A stretch of 64,000 nt of DNA from positions 10,850,001-10,914,000 of the forward strand of contig CP075492.1 in assembly GCA_021613535.1 (NCBI GenBank). The letters run 5' to 3'. The notes under the pieces were generated by a model. The model was not told where the DNA came from and ran no database searches. It was given only the letters and a program-made list of their open reading frames with translations. This document shows positions 2,332-36,871 of the stretch, in pieces. How positions within the stretch are numbered: the first letter of the stretch is position 1; every line of letters starts with the position of its first letter. The stretch comes from Adineta vaga. Taxonomy: Eukaryota; Animalia; Rotifera. The position numbers were made by a program, and so were the translations under genes.

Positions 2332-5300
2332 ATGTTATCAATAAGACGATCATCAACGACGAAACCAACAACCTATCATTCGTATAATTTACATGCTTTT
2401 GAACTAACACATGATCATTATTCAATTGTTGTACATTTTCTTGATGATACTGAACGAACTTTTCATGTTGATGTAAGTTGTTATCTAACTTTTAATTTCT
2501 TATTATGTCTTTTTTTAAATTTTTCTAGCGTCGATGTAAAGGAAGTGATTTATTGAATGAAATTTTTGATTATTTGGATTTAGCGAGTGAACGAAAATAT
2601 TTCGGTTTACTTATTGAAGATTTAACACAAGATTTTGCATATCAATGGTTAGATTCAATCAAGCCATTGAAGAAACAATTTAAAACAAATGTAACAACTT
2701 ATCATCTTTATTTTAAAGTTCGATTTTTTCCAACAGATCCAGCAACACAAATCGATGATGAATTTAGTAAATATTTACTTGTATTACAAATTAAAAAGGA
2801 ACTTCTAAGTGGAAAAATTTGGTGTCCAAGAACAGTAGCGATTATATTAGGAAGCTATATTATACAAAGTAAAAAGTATAAAAAATACAGGAAAAACAAA
2901 TAAATTCATTTTTATTTTAGGTGAATTGGGTGATTATGATGATAATGAACATCAATATGGTTATTTAAAAGATTTTCGTTTTGTACCTTTTCAAAATACT
3001 GATTTCGAAAATGAAGTACAACATCATCATGAACAACATAGGTAATTAAGATTTAATTTGATCATGAGGAAAATTGGATTTCCCTGTAAATAGAGGTCAA
3101 TCGCCAGCCGATGCAGAAAATAATTATCTTCGTGTGGCTAGCTCTTTGGATATGTATGGTGTTGAATTGCATAAATCATCTGTAAAAGTAATGAATTGAA
3201 TTATCTCCATATCTTATTTTCTTAATGGATATAATTAGGTGTCGAATATAAATGATGGGATTTATAATTCTCTTATGGAATTATATGTTGGCGTTTCAGC
3301 AAGTGGAATATCTGTCTTTCAAAATTCGACAAGAATTAGCACATTTCTCTGGTAAGAGATAAGGAAAGAGAGCAGTCGAAGAAAACGAGAATGCTTTTTC
3401 TTTCTTGATAGGGATCAAATAACTAAAATATCATTTAAACGTCGCACATTTTACGTTCAACTTGTTAAAAATATCGTAAGTATATAATTTGATACTCAGA
3501 ATGAAATAAAAGGAATATGACGAAGACGTATTTTTTATGTATTTTATCTTCGTCTATGAGAACAGACGAAAACAAGAGTCATTATTCATACATTATATCA
3601 GGTTACTAAAGTACTGAAATATCTCTCTTCAGTACATTGTGTACTTAGTCAGAAAAATCTTTTTATAAACAATGTTTTTATTTTATTTCTTTTTACATAG
3701 GACGTCTCGGATGATAATTCAATCATATTTACATTACGTAATTATCGTTGTTGTAAATATTTATGGAAATCATGTGTTGATCATCATACGTTTTTTCGCT
3801 TATCATCCACACCATCGTCACCAAAAAAATTGTTTCCATTTTCGAATAAACTTCGTCAAAAACATGACGAAACGGATAATCAACCGAAAGCTTCATTTGT
3901 AGAAACAACTGAGAAAAAACAAAAGGCATTCGAAAGGTAAATAAAATGATGATAGTTTTCTAAAAAAGGATGTGACTCTTATCTATTCAGAGTATCAAGC
4001 CGACGAAGTAATCCATCGATAATACCACTCGCTCCTTTGAGTAATAATCTTCCTATAATGAAAAGTTCGAATGTATCGATTCCAAAATTTACTAATGTTG
4101 TGAAGAATTCATCACCACCACCAAAACCTCCTCGACAATTTTGTAAACCATTATTAGTAACTAATGTACTTCTGGAAGCAAATGAATATAAACCAAAAAA
4201 TGCAATACAACCTCGAGAAAGGTAAGAAGAAAATCAACGACCGATTCTAAAGAATATACGTAGGTGGAAGAGAACGGAAAAATTCTTACGCGTCCATATA
4301 GAAATAATTTATACGCTGACAAAGAAAACTATTTCATATTTGGTTAAAGTTTTTCTTCTATGGTGAACAATCTTACAATGTCACTATAATAAATTAGTAG
4401 AATACATACAATATTAATTTCCCTTGAGAAGAAAGAAGAAAACTTGTGAAAACAGTATTTCACAATTCATTTCTATGATTATTTAGTCTTCAAAATCTTC
4501 CAATGATTGATTCATCAATGTTATGTACGACTTTCGATTCAATTCTTATTAAATTAATACCAGATGTTGATGGTCGATATGGTTTTAATGTTAAAGTATT
4601 TGATTTCTTAACACAATTTGAAACATATGGTTCGATTCATTTTTCAGGGTGGAGAAAATGAACAAGCACCAACTGTTGTTTCAAAAGTTGCATACAATAC
4701 ACCAGCAAGTCGAGCATCGATTCATGAAGGTGATATTATATTAGCAATTAATAATATTGATATTCGAAATCATTCATATGAAGAAGTAAATTGAATGTCT
4801 TCGGTTTTCTTTCTCTTCTTAATTGAAAATTATTGTATTTAGATTACCGATATGATTCGACATTCACGTGAACGACCTCGAGGAGAATTAGAATTATTGA
4901 TAAAATCAAATGATGAAAAAAATTTATTAGAAAATTCATTACAAACTTTACGTGATGACTTACGATCAAATCAATTAATTGAGCGATATGAGGTAAATCT
5001 GATCAACTGCAATAAAGTCTATTTGAGTTTATTGATGGAACTTTGGAGATAATTTCATCCATTTTATCAGTCTAATAGAGAGTAAATTTAAAATGAACTT
5101 TGATATTCTATCGATTCTAATTTCGGTAGTAAAATAATTTGTTCTTTACCAATGTTGATCAATGATATTCTGTTTAGGCTCTTCAACGTCGTAAAGACGG
5201 TTTTACGTTCGAAATAAGTAGTCATCAAACAAATATCTATCGTAATCGTTATAAAGATGTTTTACCCTATGATCAAACACGTGTTATTCTGAAAACAGAT

Positions 5301-27068: not shown

Positions 27069-30000
27069 TCTTTCCAAATTTTCAAATCAAAGCATTTATA
27101 ACAGTGACTTGAACATTTAATGATATTTGATGTGTGTTCTTGACATTTTTTTTGTAATATTATCACTTTATGTCAAAATTATTTTAGTTGTGTGATCTTT
27201 GTCTTTATGTATATATATATACAATATTCCATCCGTTCATAATATAGAAAGAATCTTCTTTTTGAGTATTAAGAAACTAATGAAAAATATCATGACATAA
27301 TATATCTTCGACGATGAATTATCTTCATCGATCATCTTCGAGTATGCTAGTAGACACCTTGCAATTCCAATTTGAAAAATACAAGGTGTTACAAAGTGAA
27401 GCCGCTAGGAGCGAGCTGTTTCAAATTGAAGAAAATGATTCATAACAATGATCATTGTGTTTGTCAACAATTCTATACCGATGAAAATTGTCTCAAAGGT
27501 AACAGCTTGTTTTTACGGTATGTCAAATGAAAACAAGAGAATGCTACTATCTTTTCTTGTGTTAAATGACCAGTTCGTTCATTGCCGCTGTTTTTAGATA
27601 CACCGATGGATGCTTCTAATTGATCAATAACTTGTCAGGAAACATCTTGAAATATTGAGATCTCTAAGAAGTACAATCAATGATCAATATCAATTTTGTT
27701 TTGATCTTTTGACTCTTCATGTATGACATTGAAAAAGAAGAAGATGTGTATTTTTCAATTGTATGACTGGCAACTAGACGTGAATAGGTGATGATAGATT
27801 ACACATGATGTTCTCTTCTTTTCCCAGCATATCGTTTCATATTATCATTCAACTGACAAGTGCGATGCCATACATGTGTATGTTCAATCGATCTGAAATA
27901 ATTGAATTATCTCAAAGCAGCAGGTTGAAATGAATTGCTTATCTAAATAAAATTGGTTTATGTCATTTTTCGAAGACGAACATTCGATTCATCAGAATTA
28001 TATGACGTAAAAGTTTTTAAACTCATAGAGATTCTATACTCAAATTGATGTGAGAAATACGATTTGATCTTGAAAATGTTTATATTTATATCGCAGTGAT
28101 ACATGAAAGCAGTGTATCATTATCTGCTGTATGATATTTTTGTAAAGAAGACAACTTATCTTAAAGAAAGCAAGAAATTTGGTTTATAAGAGCAAATACA
28201 CTGTACTTTCAATGTAACAAGGTATTACTAGAATATTCACACAACTCTTTATACATTTTTATGTATTGTTTTTTTTAAAATCATATATGCTGCAAATAGC
28301 ATGAAGTATAAGTTTCAAACAATTTATATGAATCGGAAAACAAAATCTTCAAATCAACACGCTAAAAGTTTTATGTACAATTGGAAACTCTTCGTGTTCC
28401 AATATTGCTGTATTTCAGAAGACATCTTTCATAATGCGATAGTTTTGTGTTGTTGTGTGAAATGATGTTCAAAAAACATAAACAACTTTCATAGAAGTGA
28501 GAAATGTTTTGTTTCCATTGCCAATTTGTTCCGATCGCATTTGTACAAGCTGTTTATTGCGTCATGGGGATCTATCCAATTAGTTCATTTGTCATCTTTG
28601 ACCAATTGGTCATTCTTTTCTTCACCAATTGGATAAGTGTGAAAAGATCAGTTTTCTCTTCTTCTAAAGAGAAAGAGAGAGAGATGATAATTTTCTTTTT
28701 CTTCTTTTTCTCATTGGTGAATAAAAGTGAAGCATTGTAAACAATTTAGAGTATAAATAGTCATGTTTCAAAACAGAAGCATCAATAGTCAGATAATTTA
28801 ATCTGAACAAACAGAAAAACATTTCGTAAAGGTAGGTCTCATCTTGTCTCTTTGATTTATGGCACTTTAATTCACGGCTACTTATATCAATGTTTGCCGT
28901 GTACTACTGCGTCATGCATTGAGAGACAACTTTTCGACGATACTCTTTTTCTAGCTACTATCTTAAAATTGATAATATTTTCATTAACAATCGGTTCAGT
29001 TTCGGTCAATGGCACATAATTTGAAGACGGTTGACATTGCTAACTCCGTTTTTATCTGTGTGTCACCAATCGATTTGAATGTCAAATAATGAATTAAATA
29101 TAGTTTCTGGAAAAACAACGTTGTTATATGAGTGATTACTCAAAGATGGCAAGGTATAAAAATGGATTACTTCTAGTAACAAGTGGGTCATTGAACTATT
29201 TAAAGATAGTTTCAATTATGTGACTATATTTCCGAATCAACCATAGAGCACATTTTCAAGAATTTCATGAGTGCTTAGGCGGAGTAATAGTGTACGTGAT
29301 AATCTGATATTTCTAAAAATAGTTAGTTGGAAATAAAATAATATTGCTTTATGGAGGAACAACTTAGTGAGATAAGTTATGATGGTTGTTTGTATTTGGA
29401 ATACATATTTGAAATTAAAGTAATAACGGTTATAAATCAACAAATATATATATACATTGGAAGAGGACGTAAAACTTTGAAAACAGAAATTGAAGGAATT
29501 GGTGTATGTTCTCAGTTAGGGATAGGAACAGATGAGGAATGAATGAAAAATATAATATAAATGAAGCATTTTTATAACAACAAAAGAACGTAATGATTTG
29601 AACGAAATATGTAATAATAAGTCACGAAAATGAATAAATCTGATTCTATTCGAACATAACTTGATCGAGGTTCTTTCATAACAGAGATTTTTCCAAGCTT
29701 CGTTGAGAAGTATTTCTTTATGTTTTAGAATTTCAAATGATTACACGATCATAAAATGTAACAATAGTTTTTTTTACTTAAAAATAATTGTATGACTTTT
29801 TCATGAAGTTACGACTATTTCGGCAGAGACGTTTGTGAATAAGTTGTAGATACGTCTTATAAATTTAAACTCTCATCTTTAGTTTAATATGTATATTAAT
29901 CTTAATGTTTTAGTTTCATACTGATAAAATCAAGATTGATTTATTGAAGGAAAAGATTAAGTGATTGAAACAAACTATACGAATCGTGACTTTCTGAGAG

Positions 30001-30411
30001 ATTAAATTGATTTTTCTAATACATCATTGAGACGATCGATTAAAGAGAAGTAAACAGAAATGTATTGCTTTAGAGTCTTACTCATTTTCCTCTTTCTTAT
30101 ATGTGTATAGCAACTGGAAAAGAATGTTTTCCTTTCAAAGTCTTCGTTCAGTTTTTGAAAAAAATAACCTTGTCATTGTATTAGAATGTTTTTCTTTCTC
30201 ACAGACAGAAAGGAAAGAACAACGTGTAGGGAAGAAAAGAACAGAAAAATTCTTTTTTATATACCACTTGTCAGAGATGAAGTAAGTAAAAATAATATAA
30301 AGAAAATAAAACAATTCTGTCATTGACGCTCACATTACCTACCGACGATTGTGTGTCGCTCAAGTGTAAAACATATTTAATAGTTGAAGATTGCTTTGAT
30401 TTATCTCAGTC

Positions 30412-33400
30412 ATGCGTCGTGGAAGAGTAAGTCTTACTGTTCTATTCCAAATGTATACTAACTTAGATGTTGAATTTAGATCTATCCAAGTAAAACAGTT
30501 TCATACTTTCGTACATGTTGGACATACAAATCTTGGGGTGCACTTATTGGTGTTCTTGGTGCTTTAATAGTTCTATCTGGACTACATATTGGTTGGGAGT
30601 GAGTTCATATCTTTCCAGAATAATAAGAATTTCATTCTATTTTGAATTTTAGTTTTCCTATAATGATTAAAAATCGTCATTATTATTTTCCAATTCTATT
30701 TTCTTTGGCACTTTTCTATACAATTTCCAACTATCTTTTTGCTGCTCTACATGATCCTGGTGTTATTCCACGTCCCGATGCTGATGAAATACTTTCTGTA
30801 GAAAAAGAACATAATATTCAAACTGATTTGTAAGTTGAATCAGATTCCATTCCTATCAACTAATGATTGTTTATTAATTTTAGAAACGGAAAATATTTTC
30901 CATCTGTACCACAACCCATAACGATTCTTGTAAGAAATTTTCCCTATTCATCATCATATTGTTATACATGTCGAACTTATCGTTTACCACGTGTTTCACA
31001 TTGTTCAACTTGTAATGTTTGTGTTCAAAATTTCGATCATCATTGTCCGTGGAGTAGGAAATTCTATACTTTTCGAAGTTATTCTCAGCTAATATTGATC
31101 TTTTTTTAGTTAATAATTGTGTTGGTTTGTTAAATTATCGTTATTTTTGTAATTTTATTCTATCCTGTTCCATCCTTTGTTTATTCGGATTGATTGATAG
31201 TGGTGTAGCAGCCTATCTTCGATGGGACATGTACAAAAATGAGCCAGGACTTTATTTTGCTTATAATATTCCAAGTTTTTTCCTTGGTTTTATTAGTTTT
31301 TTTCTTATGTTTACGCTTGCTTCATTCTGGTTTTATCACTGTGGTTTAGCGATGAGTGGAGCAACAACTAGAGAAGATGTGAGTAACAAAACAGAAGAGA
31401 AAATTTCTTTCAATGAATGTATCTTGTTTTCAACAGATTAGATTACGAAAACATTTGGTAGAAAATAAACGTCACAATGGTTCACGATGTCGAAACTTAA
31501 TAGAATCTTGGTGTGGTCCTATACGACCATCGTAAATAACTTTTCTTTTGATTAATACATTTAATTGAAAATTAAATTGCTAGAGTCAATTGGAATGAAT
31601 TGTATGATATAGATCATTATGAAAAGCAAGAAGAAATCTATAAAGAAAAACGTCCAACTTTGTTAAGCAATACACTCATTATACCAACAGCAAAGATTCG
31701 AGAACATATTTATGATTTATCAACAAATAACTATCTTGGTATTCAGCAACAAGTAGCAGCATATTGTCGCACAGCTACAGGATTATTAGGTAAATGTACA
31801 TAAATTTTCAGATTTGATAGTTTTATTTCTATTTAATTGTTTGTTCATTTAGATCAACAATCGATAGTACCAACAATTAGTGCCTTCCATCATCTTCAAA
31901 CTTACACAATTGAACTGAATACTATTGACAATAATCAAATGGATGCTCGTTATTTATTAATCGACAGTAAGATTGATTAAGAATATGAGAAAAAAAATAC
32001 ATTCAGTGGTTTCTATTAAGTTGTTCTACAAGCAAATCTTTCAATCTTTTGGGATATCATTTGGAAATCTCATGTTTCATCAATTGTCATGTTATATGAA
32101 ATTAAAGATAATGTATAGAAACGATTTGTGATTTCTTTTGAATGATCATCTACTTCTTATGAATAGACTGCTCTCGTACAATATTGGCCAAATAAAACAA
32201 ATCCATCGATAACTATTGATCGTAATTATCAAATAGATTTCATTCAACATTCCAAACGATTATATACAGAGACCACTCAATTTAAATTACAAAAAGTAAG
32301 ACAAAACTAGAATTCATTGTAGGAATGAACTTCGATTTAGATTGGTGAAACAGAAACACGTATTATTGAGCATTTTCAAGTGAAGAATTGGTCAGATGTT
32401 AGTTTTGGATTAGATCCGGTTTCTCTTTTACATCTACAATATCAAATAAATGAGAAAGAGAAAGAAGAAAGACTTCATAATGGTACTCCAAATATAATAG
32501 CTATTCATAGTCGGTATGAATATTAACGAATTCGTATTTTCTTACTTTATTTAACTTTGTTTTTATCATAGTGGAATCGATACACTAGCAATAGCATACA
32601 TGACGAGTGATATAAATAGACGTTTATTGATCAGATGTGGTTTTATTAATATATTGAATACAATTACTCAACTTAATAAACACTTACCAATATGTATCAT
32701 GACTGAAGTAAGACAAAAACACGAACTCTTGTAAGTCAGCTATGTGAATATATTCAGGATGTATTGATGCATGTCTATTTGCTGATCCTACATCTATCAG
32801 CATGGACTTATTCATCAGATATAGTGACATTTCAAGGATTAAATCATCAAATAAACCGAACACTTCAATGTGGATTTGGTTCCTATTATCAAAATTCAAT
32901 CGTAGAATTGTTCCATGTAATTATGATCTTGATTTACAATTCATAATGTCTCATACGAGAAAAAAAAGTCTTCATATAACAATATTTTACGTCTTCTTTT
33001 CATTGTAGTCATTTACTACGAATAGTTTGAAAGAACTAAATGCAATTATTCCTCTGAGTATACAGAAAATGTTCAGTTTTTAATTACTCAAAATCTATTT
33101 CTCTTCTAGGTATAGAAACTTATCAGCAAGCAATTTCTATTGAACATCATGCTGTATATTTTATCAATGTAAGTTTATCATATTTATCGATATTTGTATC
33201 GAGTATTTGAATCTAAACAGAGCTATATACATTCGCAAGCATTTATTTTAACTGTTGGTCGTGATCGTAATAGTCTAGCAAAAATTATCTCACAATTAAA
33301 AATTCGACATTGTTTTTTATTTCAACATAGTAGTCATCTTGTAAGTTGATTTTCAATAAACTTTTTATGAAATATTCATTTTCGAATCAAAGGATGTGAG

Positions 33401-33950
33401 TTTTATTGAAAAACAACAATTAATATTAGATGGTAATTATTTATCGACTGATTTTCGTCGTTATTATAAGAATGAAGTGAGTCAAAATTTTTGATATTCT
33501 GATGTTTTAGATTGTTCGATATATGTAGTCTATGCCTTTCTTTTATCAACCGGTTGATTCTTGTCGAAATATTCCATTATATCGATTGTCTCGATTTCTG
33601 GTCAAACTTGATCAAAATGATGATCTACCTATTCTACTATACCTTGAGTACGTAAATGAATATAATGGTTCAAGATGATAAATTAAAACTCTATGTTTAG
33701 TGATGTTCGAGATGGTGCTATTGTATGTTTATTAGCGAATTTAATGGAACAAATGAGTATTGATAATACAGCTGATATATATCATCAAGCAAGAAAAATT
33801 GCTTTTGTTTGTCCTACATTTCGAACTCAGGTAGGATTGATTTTATTTATTGATTTTTCTTATTGTCATTATTATAAGGATGAATTGAGAACTATGTACG
33901 ACTGGATTAGAAAATGGACGGAATATGAATTGCATGATCAAGTTAATTAA
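30412..33950 (+). CDS. DHHC palmitoyltransferase (ZDHHC9/14/18-like) fused to two degenerate PTP-like domains
   Basis: [59 protein letters not shown]; frame continues via canonical introns into [37 protein letters not shown], then [17 protein letters not shown] and [31 protein letters not shown]. Confidence 0.8.
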
Positions 33951-34098
33951 GATTGTATTTTAAAGTGGCTTTGAAATTTCGTCAGATGTGTATTGAATAG
34001 AAAAAACAAGAACATTATTCATCAGATTTTCTTTCTATTTTTATAATAAAATGAAAAACAAGAATACTTTGAGAAAAGATTCTGAAAAAAGAAAAGTC

Positions 34099-35928
34099 TT
34101 ATGAATTCTGAAAACAGAATGTAGTGTCTTGTGCTCGAGCTGTTTTTAGATTACAATTAATCAAATTCATTCGACATGTTCGATCACAAGTATTGCCTGT
34201 CGTTGATGATTTCATGAAGTATTGGTAGACTAAACCCATTGTTTCACCTTCAATATCATTTTCTAATCGTATTATCAATTGATTCCATTCTTGTGGAGAA
34301 AGATCCTTCATCCCATAAGCTGATTTCGCAGAATATTCGATAAGAAATTTCGTTGTATTGTATAGATTTGTAGCGGTTAAATTAAGAATAACGGTTCGAT
34401 GATCCAATACATAAGTTGTATTAATAGCCTAGAAAATAAAGTAAATGACTAAAATTCTATGTAGAATTTTCATTATATTTACATCGATTGTATAGACACG
34501 ATATCCTGGATTGAGATTAGGATAGGTTGTAAACGAGGGTGAAATATAAGCAACAGAAACCTTCGAAAATAAATAAAGTAATCTTTCAATAGGAACGCTT
34601 TAGGTCAACTTACTGGTCGTTTAGAATATTTTTCGTCATAGAAAAGCATGAATTCATCATAATGAGTATGAGCAAAAAATTGACCAGTAATCGTATTTTG
34701 ATATCGATTAATGATACTATAATATGCCCAACTAAATGATACCATACACATTCGTGGTGGATGATGTCCAATAATATGAACTTTTTCTTGATGTTCTTCA
34801 GCGTATTGAAGCCATTGAATTAACTATAAGATACGAAAAAGAAATAAAACTTTCAAATAATATAGAAATTACCCATTGTAGTTGTCCGAGAGGATCTGTT
34901 GAATTAATAAAAAGCCAATAGTTATTTTCAGTGCAATAATTCATATTTAATGAGATTAATCGAAGATTTGTTTCAATGATTGTAGTGTAATAACCTCCTT
35001 TAAGAATAGTATCACGTGTACGTTCATTCAATCCAAATTGTCCAATCCATTGATTGGCTAAGATTGAGTAAAGCCAAGACATGTTATTTGTTGAAAAAAG
35101 ATCCGGTGGTGCTGCTTCATGATTACCAACACATGGATAGATTTTTTTATTCGGAAATGTTTGTTTTAATAAACGAGTAGTAAATGAAATTTCTTCGAGA
35201 TCTTTTTCTTGAGTTTGTTGCCAAACATCATGTGGAGCAATATCACCAGTGAAATAAATAAAATCAATCTGTTCTTCCGTTTGAACGATATATTGTAACA
35301 TACTTTCTGCAGTCCACTGTGGTAGATCACATGTACGATAATCACCCCAAAACTGTGCACCAATTTCACCAACTTTCGGTGTTCCATCACGACAACAAAG
35401 TGGTCGACCACAATTAGCATTTGAACCAGGTGTATATTTTGCATCAATATGCAAATCAGCAAGATGAAGAACGGAATAAATCGGATTTGTAGATGATTGC
35501 GTAGGAGATTGAACGACAGAGGAAAATGTTTGTACAGTTGATGGAGGAAAAGTAACATTCCATCGTAGTGCAGGAATATCTGCCTGTCGCATACATCCAA
35601 ATGCTACACCACAAATTTCATGTGTCGATAGCGGACTATGACGAAGTACTTCAATAAGTACAGGATTATATTCATCAATCATACCAGCACATACAGCATC
35701 ATCGGCAAGATGTAGATATTGACATAATGTGATACCTAGTTTCTCAATCAATGATGATTCATTAATTGCAATAAGACCTTTTGCAATAGGTAACAACATA
35801 TTGCACAATTCACATGGTGTCAATTCATTAGCTTGTGTGTTCACTAGGGAAATAGGTAGAGTAGATAATTGTTTTAAAATAAAAAGTAGACAGAAACCAA
35901 TGTAAAAACATCGAACTATCATCATCAT
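34099..35928 (-). CDS. SMPD1: Acid sphingomyelinase (saposin B + metallophosphoesterase)
   Basis: Signal peptide, saposin CELC..LCQYL..VCAG..ICG..C; DLHID, CGRPLCCR, WGDYRTCD, TGDIAPH, GNHE, IIGHHPP, AHTHYDEF, NLNPGYRVY; 4 exons. Confidence 0.92.
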
Positions 35929-36871
35929 CGTTGTTGAGAGAAACAAATATTCGTTCTAGTTTTCGTTAGATATTTATTCAAAACAAGTCTGCTGATAACA
36001 AAATGACAACCATATCTCTCTCTCTCTCTCTCGTTCTAGATAAATCTTCATTACACTTGATTCTTTCAAGTCATCAAGTAAATGCAAATATGTTAAATAG
36101 ATTTATTCATGAATTAACTCTTTCTTTTTCATCGATAAAAAAATCAAGACATTAGACGACTTATTAAAGTTCACATGAGAAGAGAAAAAACAAAATGTAC
36201 ACTTTGATTTCAACAAATATAACAAAATTAAACATGAAATACTACTTTCATTGAAATATGTTTACTAGGAATAATTCTTGATTGTGCTGTCAATGAATCA
36301 GATATAATAATTTGTTCTTTAGTCATAATTGCTTTGAGAATACAACTATTTCTTTTCAACGATTGATTTTGTAGAGATATCTGAAATAAGGAAATATTAT
36401 TATGCTCAAATTTTATTTTAAAACTTACATTTTTTTCAATATGGCAATTTTGACTTTTTTTAACTGGTGCAAAAGTCAATTGTTGATCGCTGTCATCATC
36501 ACTTGTAAGATAACGTTGCTAAAAGATCCCTTTCGGAGTTAGTTGGAAAATGTTTTCTATGGAAAATATACTTCTCTTTGACAATCAAGTTGACTTGAAA
36601 CAGTTGTTATGGAAGATGATGGAAGTAAACGATAGGAATCATTTGATTCACTCCACTTTAATGATGATGATGATGATGAATTTGTCAAACATGAAGAACA
36701 AGAACAAAGTGACATCTGTAACAAAGTATAAGAAAAAAAGAACAGAATTATATAGGAGAGAAGAAACCTCTCTGAATTTCTTGAACATAATGGCTGAATG
36801 ACATGTCAGAAGATCAGCATTTTCATCTGAGTAAAACGCGCCGTTAGTTTACAAGTTCAAAGTAAAACGTC

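Follow-up and report, generated by a model that had tools for sequence, protein, structure and literature searches.

In the bdelloid rotifer Adineta vaga, a gene at positions 30412-33950 (forward strand) of a 64,000-nucleotide (nt) stretch of the genome, hereafter the window, joins a predicted S-acyltransferase of the zDHHC family to two successive protein tyrosine phosphatase (PTP)-like domains, D1 and D2. That this architecture is real and expressed is close to certain, and the explanation that best covers the data as a whole, which we consider probable, is an expressed ZDHHC9-type enzyme carrying a tandem, non-catalytic PTP-like module. The substrate choice of individual zDHHC enzymes is an open problem and few of these enzymes have recognisable docking domains; a tandem of the type seen in receptor PTPs (RPTPs) on a ZDHHC9-like enzyme is a natural experiment on how an accessory domain can re-target or regulate an acyltransferase.

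The gene was rebuilt from a three-frame translation of the window (C3:10850001-10914000, 30% G+C, in an assembly of 100.8 Mb and six contigs) and checked by script. It has 20 exons that sum to 2487 nt and encode 828 codons plus a stop in a frame that is open throughout; the 19 introns, each bounded by GT..AG, measure 45-92 nt, in a genome region with introns of about 50 nt. It corresponds to NCBI I4U23_014231 (protein P0019). An earlier reading of the letters alone, hereafter the original prediction, had described a frame that runs without a stop over canonical short introns, and every coordinate and peptide it quoted is found in the sequence, including DHHC at 31035-31046, TTRE at 31364-31375 and an in-frame TAA at 31801-31803. 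Searches of the window gene were done exon by exon; full-length analyses used the public proteins P0019 and, for a second copy on contig C6, P0014.

To check the transcript, contigs from four public runs (X1, X2, X5 and X10, from three studies) were mapped to 29900-34400. Fifteen of the 19 joints are listed as GT..AG skips exactly at the predicted introns, and the other four (30829/30884, 31966/32021, 32112/32167 and 32513/32572) are seen from record coordinates that continue without a gap or from loose ends with the sequence of the adjoining exon. The contigs skip introns and therefore derive from spliced RNA, though the RNA label of the runs is a guess. One of them, X10 record 5 (1739 nt), starts at 30301, covers exons 1-11 and reaches into exon 12, which places DHHC and D1 on one molecule; X2 record 10 joins exons 11, 12 and 13, and X5 record 13 joins exons 12-20 and the 3' end. 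Because the DHHC exons and D1 share an RNA contig, and because the corresponding junction in the C6 copy is free of introns, 30412-33950 is one expressed gene and not two neighbours. Its features, all on the forward strand, are as follows (UTR, untranslated region; TM, transmembrane segment).

30301-30411, +, 5' UTR, at least as far as an RNA contig reaches (X10 record 5 begins at 30301 and continues into exon 1)
30412-30426, +, exon 1 (MRRGR), ATG at 30412; joint 30426/30480 in three runs
30480-30598, +, exon 2, TM1; contig joints, hydrophobic segment at residues 25-43, 67% identity to the C6 copy
30653-30829, +, exon 3, TM2; contiguous record coordinates over 30829/30884, 79% identity to the C6 copy
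30884-31053, +, exon 4, cysteine-rich domain with DHHC at 31035-31046; Pfam DHHC E 2.1e-12, pattern Cx2Cx9HCx2Cx2Cx4DHHC
31110-31378, +, exon 5, end of the cysteine-rich domain, TM3, TM4 and TTRE at 31364-31375; Pfam DHHC E 5.3e-12, hydrophobic segments
31437-31531, +, exon 6, ZDHHC9-type C-terminal motif; flanking joints with the full 95 nt on one side in X1, X2 and X10
31584-31789, +, exon 7, linker and N-terminal helices ahead of D1; 60% identity to the C6 copy, dN/dS (ratio of nonsynonymous to synonymous substitution rates) 0.29
31790-31852, +, intron 7, 63 nt, with the in-frame TAA at 31801-31803; spliced out in X1, X2 and X10, no such intron in the C6 copy
31853-31966, 32021-32112 and 32167-32295, +, D1 exons 8-10; joints and loose ends of contigs
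32341-32513, 32572-32707 and 32758-32916, +, D1 exons 11-13; joints and loose ends of contigs
32389-32397, +, WSD, D1 equivalent of the WPD motif; read from the sequence
32506-32513 plus 32572-32587, +, HSRGIDTL, D1 equivalent of the P-loop; read from the sequence
33009-33057, 33110-33168, 33221-33340 and 33393-33476, +, D2 exons 14-17; all joints on one X5 contig, also in X1 and X10
33529-33647, 33701-33830 and 33879-33950, +, D2 exons 18-20 including the stop; all joints on one X5 contig, also in X1 and X10
33628-33647 plus 33701-33724, +, PILLYLDDVRDGAI, D2 equivalent of the P-loop; read from the sequence
33951-34092, +, 3' UTR, end approximate (X1 record 3 terminates at 34092); AATAAA-like signals in the sequence

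The joint 31789/31853, across which the original prediction had proposed to look for RNA, is spliced in X1, X2 and X10, with a shorter side of 118 nt in X10. The same prediction held that retention of intron 7 would give a DHHC-only isoform; this is not borne out, given that the contigs contain only the spliced form and that the C6 copy lacks the intron altogether.

By sequence, the N-terminal part is an intact ZDHHC9-type S-acyltransferase. Pfam PF01529 (DHHC) matches P0019 with 109.8 bits against a cut-off of 28.7, and the profile is also recovered from single exons (exon 4, E 2e-12, 47.7 bits, profile 4-38; exon 5, E 5e-12, 46.4 bits, profile 40-128). Read together, these two exons contain the complete zinc-binding pattern Cx2Cx9HCx2Cx2Cx4DHHCx5Cx4Nx3F. 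Hydrophobic segments of P0019 lie at residues 25-43, 59-77, 176-194 and 217-235, with DHHC at 155 and TTRE at 246, so that DHHC falls between TM2 and TM3 and the TTxE motif past TM4, as in the canonical four-TM zDHHC layout (the cytosolic side is taken from homology). Among solved structures, the N-terminal 300 residues match ZDHHC9 (8hf3) at E 1e-30, Erf2 at 3e-26, ZDHHC5 at 9e-26 and ZDHHC20 at 3e-19. The alignment to human ZDHHC9 8hf3 runs from TM2 through DHHC, TM3-4 and TTxE to CGPLPPSV, and exon 6 aligns to the ZDHHC9 segment NCCEVLCGPLPPSV by way of the C6 copy. The label ZDHHC9/14/18-type given in the original prediction is thus a reasonable one, with human ZDHHC9 as the best solved match and an alignment that extends through CGPxxPS.

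In the public model I4U23_014231 (P0019, 812 aa), exon 6 (31437-31531) is 16 residues short and in another frame. The full 95 nt are present in X1, X2 and X10 contigs and the C6 copy has the matching NLISSWCGPLQPSVNWN; hence the annotation seems mis-spliced at this exon, dropping the conserved CGPxxPS motif. Single-base differences between runs occur over 30394-34305 (e.g. 30928 T>G, 31186 C>T, 31192 G>A, 32229 T>C and 33932 G>A), several of them common to runs from different studies, and they look like allelic or strain variants, not editing. At 33645-33647, X2 has CGA instead of TGA.

D1 is a classical PTP domain and, judged by its motifs, a pseudophosphatase. Pfam PF00102 (Y_phosphatase) matches residues 354-560 of P0019 with 72.6 bits (cut-off 20.9) over positions 30-233 of the 234-position profile, and single exons give weak but collinear matches (exon 9, E 4.9e-4, profile 55-78; exon 11, E 0.016, profile 129-166). 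Solved PTPs (PTP-sigma, LAR, PTP1B and TCPTP) match at E 1e-14 to 1e-12, and RPTP-alpha matches the window-gene D1 better with its D1 (57 bits) than with its D2 (40 bits). The sequence carries QYWP in exon 10, HFQVKNWSD in exon 11 and IAIHS/RGIDT across the exon 11/12 joint. In the P-loop, where HCX5R is expected, HSRGIDTL has Ser for the Cys and Leu for the Arg, and it is on this replacement of both residues that the pseudophosphatase assignment is based. WSD replaces WPD with the Asp kept, and the Q-loop, IMTEDVLMHVY, has no Gln. The KNRY loop is matched neither by Pfam, whose alignments start at profile positions 30-51, nor by solved structures, and the modelled stretch has a predicted local distance difference test (pLDDT) score below 50. 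The original prediction of a D1 with IAIHSRGIDT in place of the catalytic Cys/Arg motif therefore stands.

D2 is far more diverged. Neither its exons (16-20) nor residues 580-812 of P0019 have a Pfam match, and hhalign relates the D1 profile to the D2 profile with a probability of 0.1%, which rules out that D2 is a recent duplicate of D1. With Pfam blank and the two profiles unmatched, D2 cannot be assigned by sequence; its profile finds among solved structures only CD45 D2 (E 0.05) and PTPRZ D2 (E 0.1), both marginal, in the right register from the P-loop to alpha-6. The predicted structure is more informative. An AlphaFold2 (AF2) model of D2 alone (12 sequences; pLDDT 72, predicted template modelling score (pTM) 0.71) aligns in VIA-align to RPTP-alpha D2 at Z 15.6 over 213 residues with a root-mean-square deviation of 4.2 Å, and to 14 other classical PTPs at Z 12-14. 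In Foldseek the best E is 7e-7 and, among the matches listed, 50 of 50 are classical PTP domains; PTPRU D1 and PTPRN2 are among the structural matches. Language-model features of D2 give Y_phosphatase for 10 of 10 named clusters among the matches listed (0.86-0.88), which serves as a lead only. At the sequence level D2 has AVYFIN at the exon 15/16 joint, PILLYL/DDVRDG across exons 18/19 and DELRTMYD at the 19/20 joint. Taken together, the model makes it very probable that D2 has a PTP fold that lacks the catalytic residues. Of the earlier claim that D2 is PTP-like, the fold is thus borne out by prediction (RPTP-alpha D2, Z 15.6), whereas a sequence match to PTPs is not found.

A model of both domains together (pLDDT 60.7, pTM 0.38) points to RPTP tandems: the top 23 Foldseek matches are all crystal structures of tandem RPTP D1-D2, at E ~1e-15 and over ~500 columns, compared with ~1e-10 for single-domain PTP1B entries. 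This structure check of the C-terminal half, proposed in the original prediction, returned a PTP fold for D2 and for the tandem and supports the receptor-PTP-like arrangement claimed there, as far as a predicted model can.

The genome contains two copies of the DHHC-PTP fusion only, one on C3 and one on C6. In the C6 copy (I4U23_028807, P0014; locus C6:4913000-4921500), exons 2-20 are collinear with the window gene at 39-84% amino-acid identity and the first exon is longer (MPSDVIVRLATTSHVRRGR). The two copies also differ through intron turnover: the C6 copy is without introns 5 and 7 and has an extra intron inside the exon 8 homologue (~4093-4140 of the locus). The two uninterrupted exons of the C6 copy that cover the positions of introns 5 and 7 are 3390-3749 and 3820-4092 of the locus C6:4913000-4921500, and a single intron-free exon leads from VNWNALYD in the DHHC tail to LQTYTIEV in the first D1 strands.

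The same architecture occurs in independent gene predictions from eight named bdelloid species or strains; the holders of the fusion are Rotaria socialis, R. magnacalcarata, R. sordida, Rotaria sp. Silwood1/2, Adineta steineri, A. ricciae and A. vaga. Over D1-D2 the bdelloid relatives are 46-69% identical. A Logan contig from SRR22100215 is cDNA-like, with an unbroken 824-codon open reading frame (ORF) that has both Pfam domains. When exon 11 was compared by phmmer with 1.84 billion representatives, 10 matches resulted: one full-length rotifer protein, eight short or exon-sized pieces and one unrelated repeat protein. Word-indexed searches for the fusion outside bdelloids, a method of limited sensitivity that leaves absence elsewhere unproven, gave only Adineta, Rotaria and one Logan contig. 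The search for proteins with DHHC plus Y_phosphatase suggested by the original prediction was thus productive, and solely within bdelloids at that sensitivity.

These data bear directly on the suspicion that the architecture is an artefact or a relic, that is, two adjacent genes misread as one or PTP exons in decay. The absence of a significant family match for D2 and the mis-spliced exon in the public model could be read that way. However, an RNA contig spans DHHC and D1, the C6 junction is intron-free, a relative has the 824-codon cDNA-like ORF, both A. vaga copies are open at a synonymous divergence (dS) of ~0.9 with a dN/dS of ~0.3 in D1 and D2, and the architecture is kept in two bdelloid genera. 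The two-gene reading is rejected on the spanning contig, the intron-free junction, the unbroken ORF and the conservation between genera, and we regard artefact or relic in any form as scarcely credible.

A maximum-likelihood tree of D1-D2 separates a group A (100/100), with Adineta and Rotaria members, from the remaining sequences (group B), in which both genera are again represented. The fusion therefore exists as two ancient paralogues that are older than the Adineta/Rotaria split. This timing fits the ancient tetraploidy of bdelloids, in which case the C3 and C6 copies would be ohnologues. The D1 P-loop differs among the lineages as follows.

Rotaria group B: HCCGINTR (Rotaria sp. Silwood2) and NCCDINTR (R. 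socialis), CX5R intact
Adineta group B: HSSGINTR (C6 copy) and HSLNVNTR, Arg retained but catalytic Cys lost
Logan contig: HTSQINTR, likewise with Arg retained but catalytic Cys lost
Rotaria group A: H[ST]CEINTR, likewise with Arg retained but catalytic Cys lost
Adineta group A, with the window gene: HSRGIDT[LP] and HSCGVNIP, Cys and Arg both lost

All Adineta copies are without the P-loop Cys, and the sequence of the window gene places it in the lineage with the most degenerate P-loop. By parsimony, the ancestral fusion had CX5R. If that pocket worked, the family would couple recognition or dephosphorylation of phosphotyrosine (pTyr) to S-acylation, and the Adineta copies would have re-used the pocket for a ligand other than pTyr. 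We think this history unlikely; if true, it would be a lineage-specific link of two signalling modifications and a natural enzyme-to-pseudoenzyme series.

The intact CX5R in the two Rotaria group-B paralogues also raises the question of whether the module is still a phosphatase, towards protein or another substrate, in part of the family, which would make a bifunctional enzyme. The Silwood2 copy, which has WTD for WPD, reaches the best Y_phosphatase score of the family, 86.9 bits. Against this, the copies with CX5R also lack the Q-loop Gln and a recognisable KNRY loop, and the Cys was replaced independently in most lineages, which suggests that catalysis is dispensable. The idea is inapplicable to the window copy, with both Cys and Arg lost, and for the rest of the family the sequences make it very improbable.

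Selection was estimated from pairwise Nei-Gojobori comparison of the window and C6 copies, summed exon by exon. The dN/dS values, 0.26 in DHHC, 0.29 in the linker, 0.36 in D1 and 0.30 in D2, are rough because dS is close to saturation. They nevertheless indicate purifying selection along the whole length, with the PTP-like domains constrained about as much as the enzyme; dN/dS of the PTP part was a check that the original prediction had proposed. The lowest values among the PTP exons are those of exon 12 (0.14) and exon 19 (0.25), the regions from the former P-loop through alpha-5.

Conservation of this kind is what a reader of pTyr might show, and the original prediction had offered a pTyr-sensing adaptor as one role of the module. 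Cys-to-Ser mutants of PTPs are classical substrate traps. Most family members have Ser or Thr for the Cys with the Arg kept (HSSGINTR in the C6 copy, H[ST]CEINTR in Rotaria group A), and the P-loop to alpha-5 region, with dN/dS 0.14 in exon 12, is the most conserved part of D1. A natural substrate trap could bring pTyr proteins to the DHHC site and so couple tyrosine phosphorylation to S-acylation. However, in the window copy and its Adineta orthologues (HSRGIDT[LP], HSCGVNIP) the Arg is lost as well, the Q-loop Gln is absent, and the N-terminal stretch in which KNRY would lie is neither reached by Pfam (starts at 30-51) nor modelled above pLDDT 50. With P-loop Arg, catalytic Cys and Q-loop Gln gone and KNRY unrecognisable, pTyr reading by the window copy is unlikely, and as an account of the module it seems to us a quite improbable one.

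We lean towards a non-catalytic docking or regulatory role for the module of the window copy. With the C-terminus cytosolic, as standard zDHHC topology would have it, the D1-D2 module would adjoin the membrane near the DHHC active site, a placement that can be likened to that of D1-D2 beneath the membrane in receptor PTPs. From there it may determine which proteins are S-acylated or hold them in place, or it may gate the enzyme, in the manner of the ankyrin repeats of ZDHHC13/17 or the SH3 domain of ZDHHC6; recruitment of substrates, as the original prediction had it, is a role that it may have.

The module might instead act on its own enzyme, as an autoinhibitory lid, in dimerisation, as a stabiliser, in sorting, or by replacing or modifying the contact with an Erf4/GCP16-type partner. 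It stands in for the C-terminal tail right after CGPxxPS, as aligned with ZDHHC9 8hf3, and the RPTLLSNTL of the exon 7 linker is almost invariant in alignment columns across relatives. In RPTPs, D1-D2 modules are known to form dimers and to regulate each other. Two large folded domains are much for a lid, though, and Erf4-family genes are still in the genome above the Pfam cut-off, so that there is no sign of partner replacement. We see in this a minority view, unlikely as things stand. Erf4/GOLGA7 (GCP16) is the partner family for ZDHHC9-type enzymes; the genome has 19 matches to it at E up to 0.01, four of them at the Pfam cut-off, and the matches include C3:4560620, C6:11928762 and C5:4838602.

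Several points weigh against an expressed ZDHHC9-type enzyme with a tandem non-catalytic module as the explanation. The conserved stretch from the former P-loop to alpha-5 in both domains could mean that a ligand cleft is kept, not just a scaffold. D2 has no significant sequence match to any family, and the case for its fold depends on an AF2 model (pLDDT 72) for which 12 closely related sequences were used. The orientation of D1 to D2 is not fixed by the model (pTM 0.38; template modelling score ~0.26 to RPTP tandems), which leaves RPTP-like packing unproven. The RNA label of the runs behind the contigs is only guessed, and contigs leave room for minor isoforms. Lastly, dS is ~0.8-0.9, near saturation, in an AT-rich genome.

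Downstream of the DHHC-PTP gene lies a convergent acid-sphingomyelinase-like gene at 34099-35946 on the reverse strand (Metallophos E 4e-7, ASMase_C E 2e-9). The stop codons of the two genes are ~150 nt apart and one X5 contig is unbroken from exon 20 to 34400; hence the two transcripts meet or overlap at their 3' ends. No match to this neighbour was found within 2.4 kb downstream of the C6 copy, so that this check gave no sign of synteny between the two copies.

As to where the PTP module came from, no donor can be named. RPTP-alpha is the best non-rotifer match at just 22-23% identity. The nearest other PTP genes of A. vaga, at C3:11444881-11445453 (-) and C6:4192260-4192811 (+), have only 24-25% identity, which is uninformative as to the donor. 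This pair appears to encode ordinary, active classical PTPs, the one at C6:4192260 (L008) having all of a set of motifs that includes QTEDQY, and the distance from each gene to the DHHC-PTP copy of its own chromosome is 0.56-0.73 Mb. A tandem PTP-like gene at C4:7824000-7833999, which is the third match to exon 11 (E 0.26), has WRMMWELKLKSIVML, QYWP and QYHFTQWKD and then, in a second segment, FWRMFIEHDSNCIVQL; it could be a rotifer tandem of the RPTP type.

The original prediction knew of no DHHC enzyme with PTP domains. For searchable papers this holds: full-text literature searches found no paper that describes a DHHC plus PTP architecture, nor a PTP-fold accessory domain on a zDHHC enzyme. 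For databases it does not, given that PF01529 and PF00102 are both on record for NCBI and UniRef relatives from the eight named bdelloid species or strains. At this level the architecture is already catalogued, an outcome that the original prediction had named as refuting and that thus applies in part. These entries are automatic predictions named 'Palmitoyltransferase', 'unnamed protein product' or 'hypothetical protein', with D2 unannotated. What is new is that the accessory domain of a zDHHC enzyme has a fold which, in searchable papers, had not been described in such a role. It is a lineage-specific find whose domains had already been flagged by annotation pipelines, and it is of use as a well-supported starting point for biochemistry rather than as a system of a new class. 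The P-loop series from CX5R, through Ser/Thr with Arg, to the loss of both residues is ready-made for studying the change from phosphatase to pseudophosphatase.

Compared with known systems, the protein is closest in its enzyme part to human ZDHHC9 and the ZDHHC9/14/18-Erf2 group, with which it has the four-TM layout and the complete cysteine-rich domain pattern in common. Where ZDHHC9 has a short tail past PPSV, however, the bdelloid protein has ~540 residues of tandem PTP-like domains. In having two successive PTP domains after a membrane anchor, on what homology indicates is the cytosolic side, it resembles the RPTP tandems (RPTP-alpha 6uzt, PTP-sigma 3sr9/2fh7, LAR 1lar, CD45 1ygr, PTPRZ 6j6u and PTP-epsilon 2jjd). 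RPTPs, in contrast, have an extracellular domain and a single TM, neither of which is found here, where a four-TM enzyme is the anchor; and their D1 is active, whereas in the window gene D1 is dead as well, by its motifs, and its KNRY loop unrecognisable. Lacking an ectodomain, a single-pass anchor and an active D1, the protein is not an RPTP; it belongs to the zDHHC family and carries an RPTP-like module. Known pseudophosphatases (PTPRU D1 6suc/6sub, IA-2beta/PTPRN2 2qep and RPTP D2) are likewise PTP folds without working catalytic residues that have been selectively kept, but they sit in receptor PTPs and none on an acyltransferase, as the bdelloid module does. In concept, the nearest counterparts are accessory domains of other zDHHC enzymes, the ZDHHC13/17 ankyrin repeats and the ZDHHC6 SH3 domain, cytosolic non-catalytic domains that recruit substrates or regulators; they differ in fold and in position, the ankyrin repeats being N-terminal.

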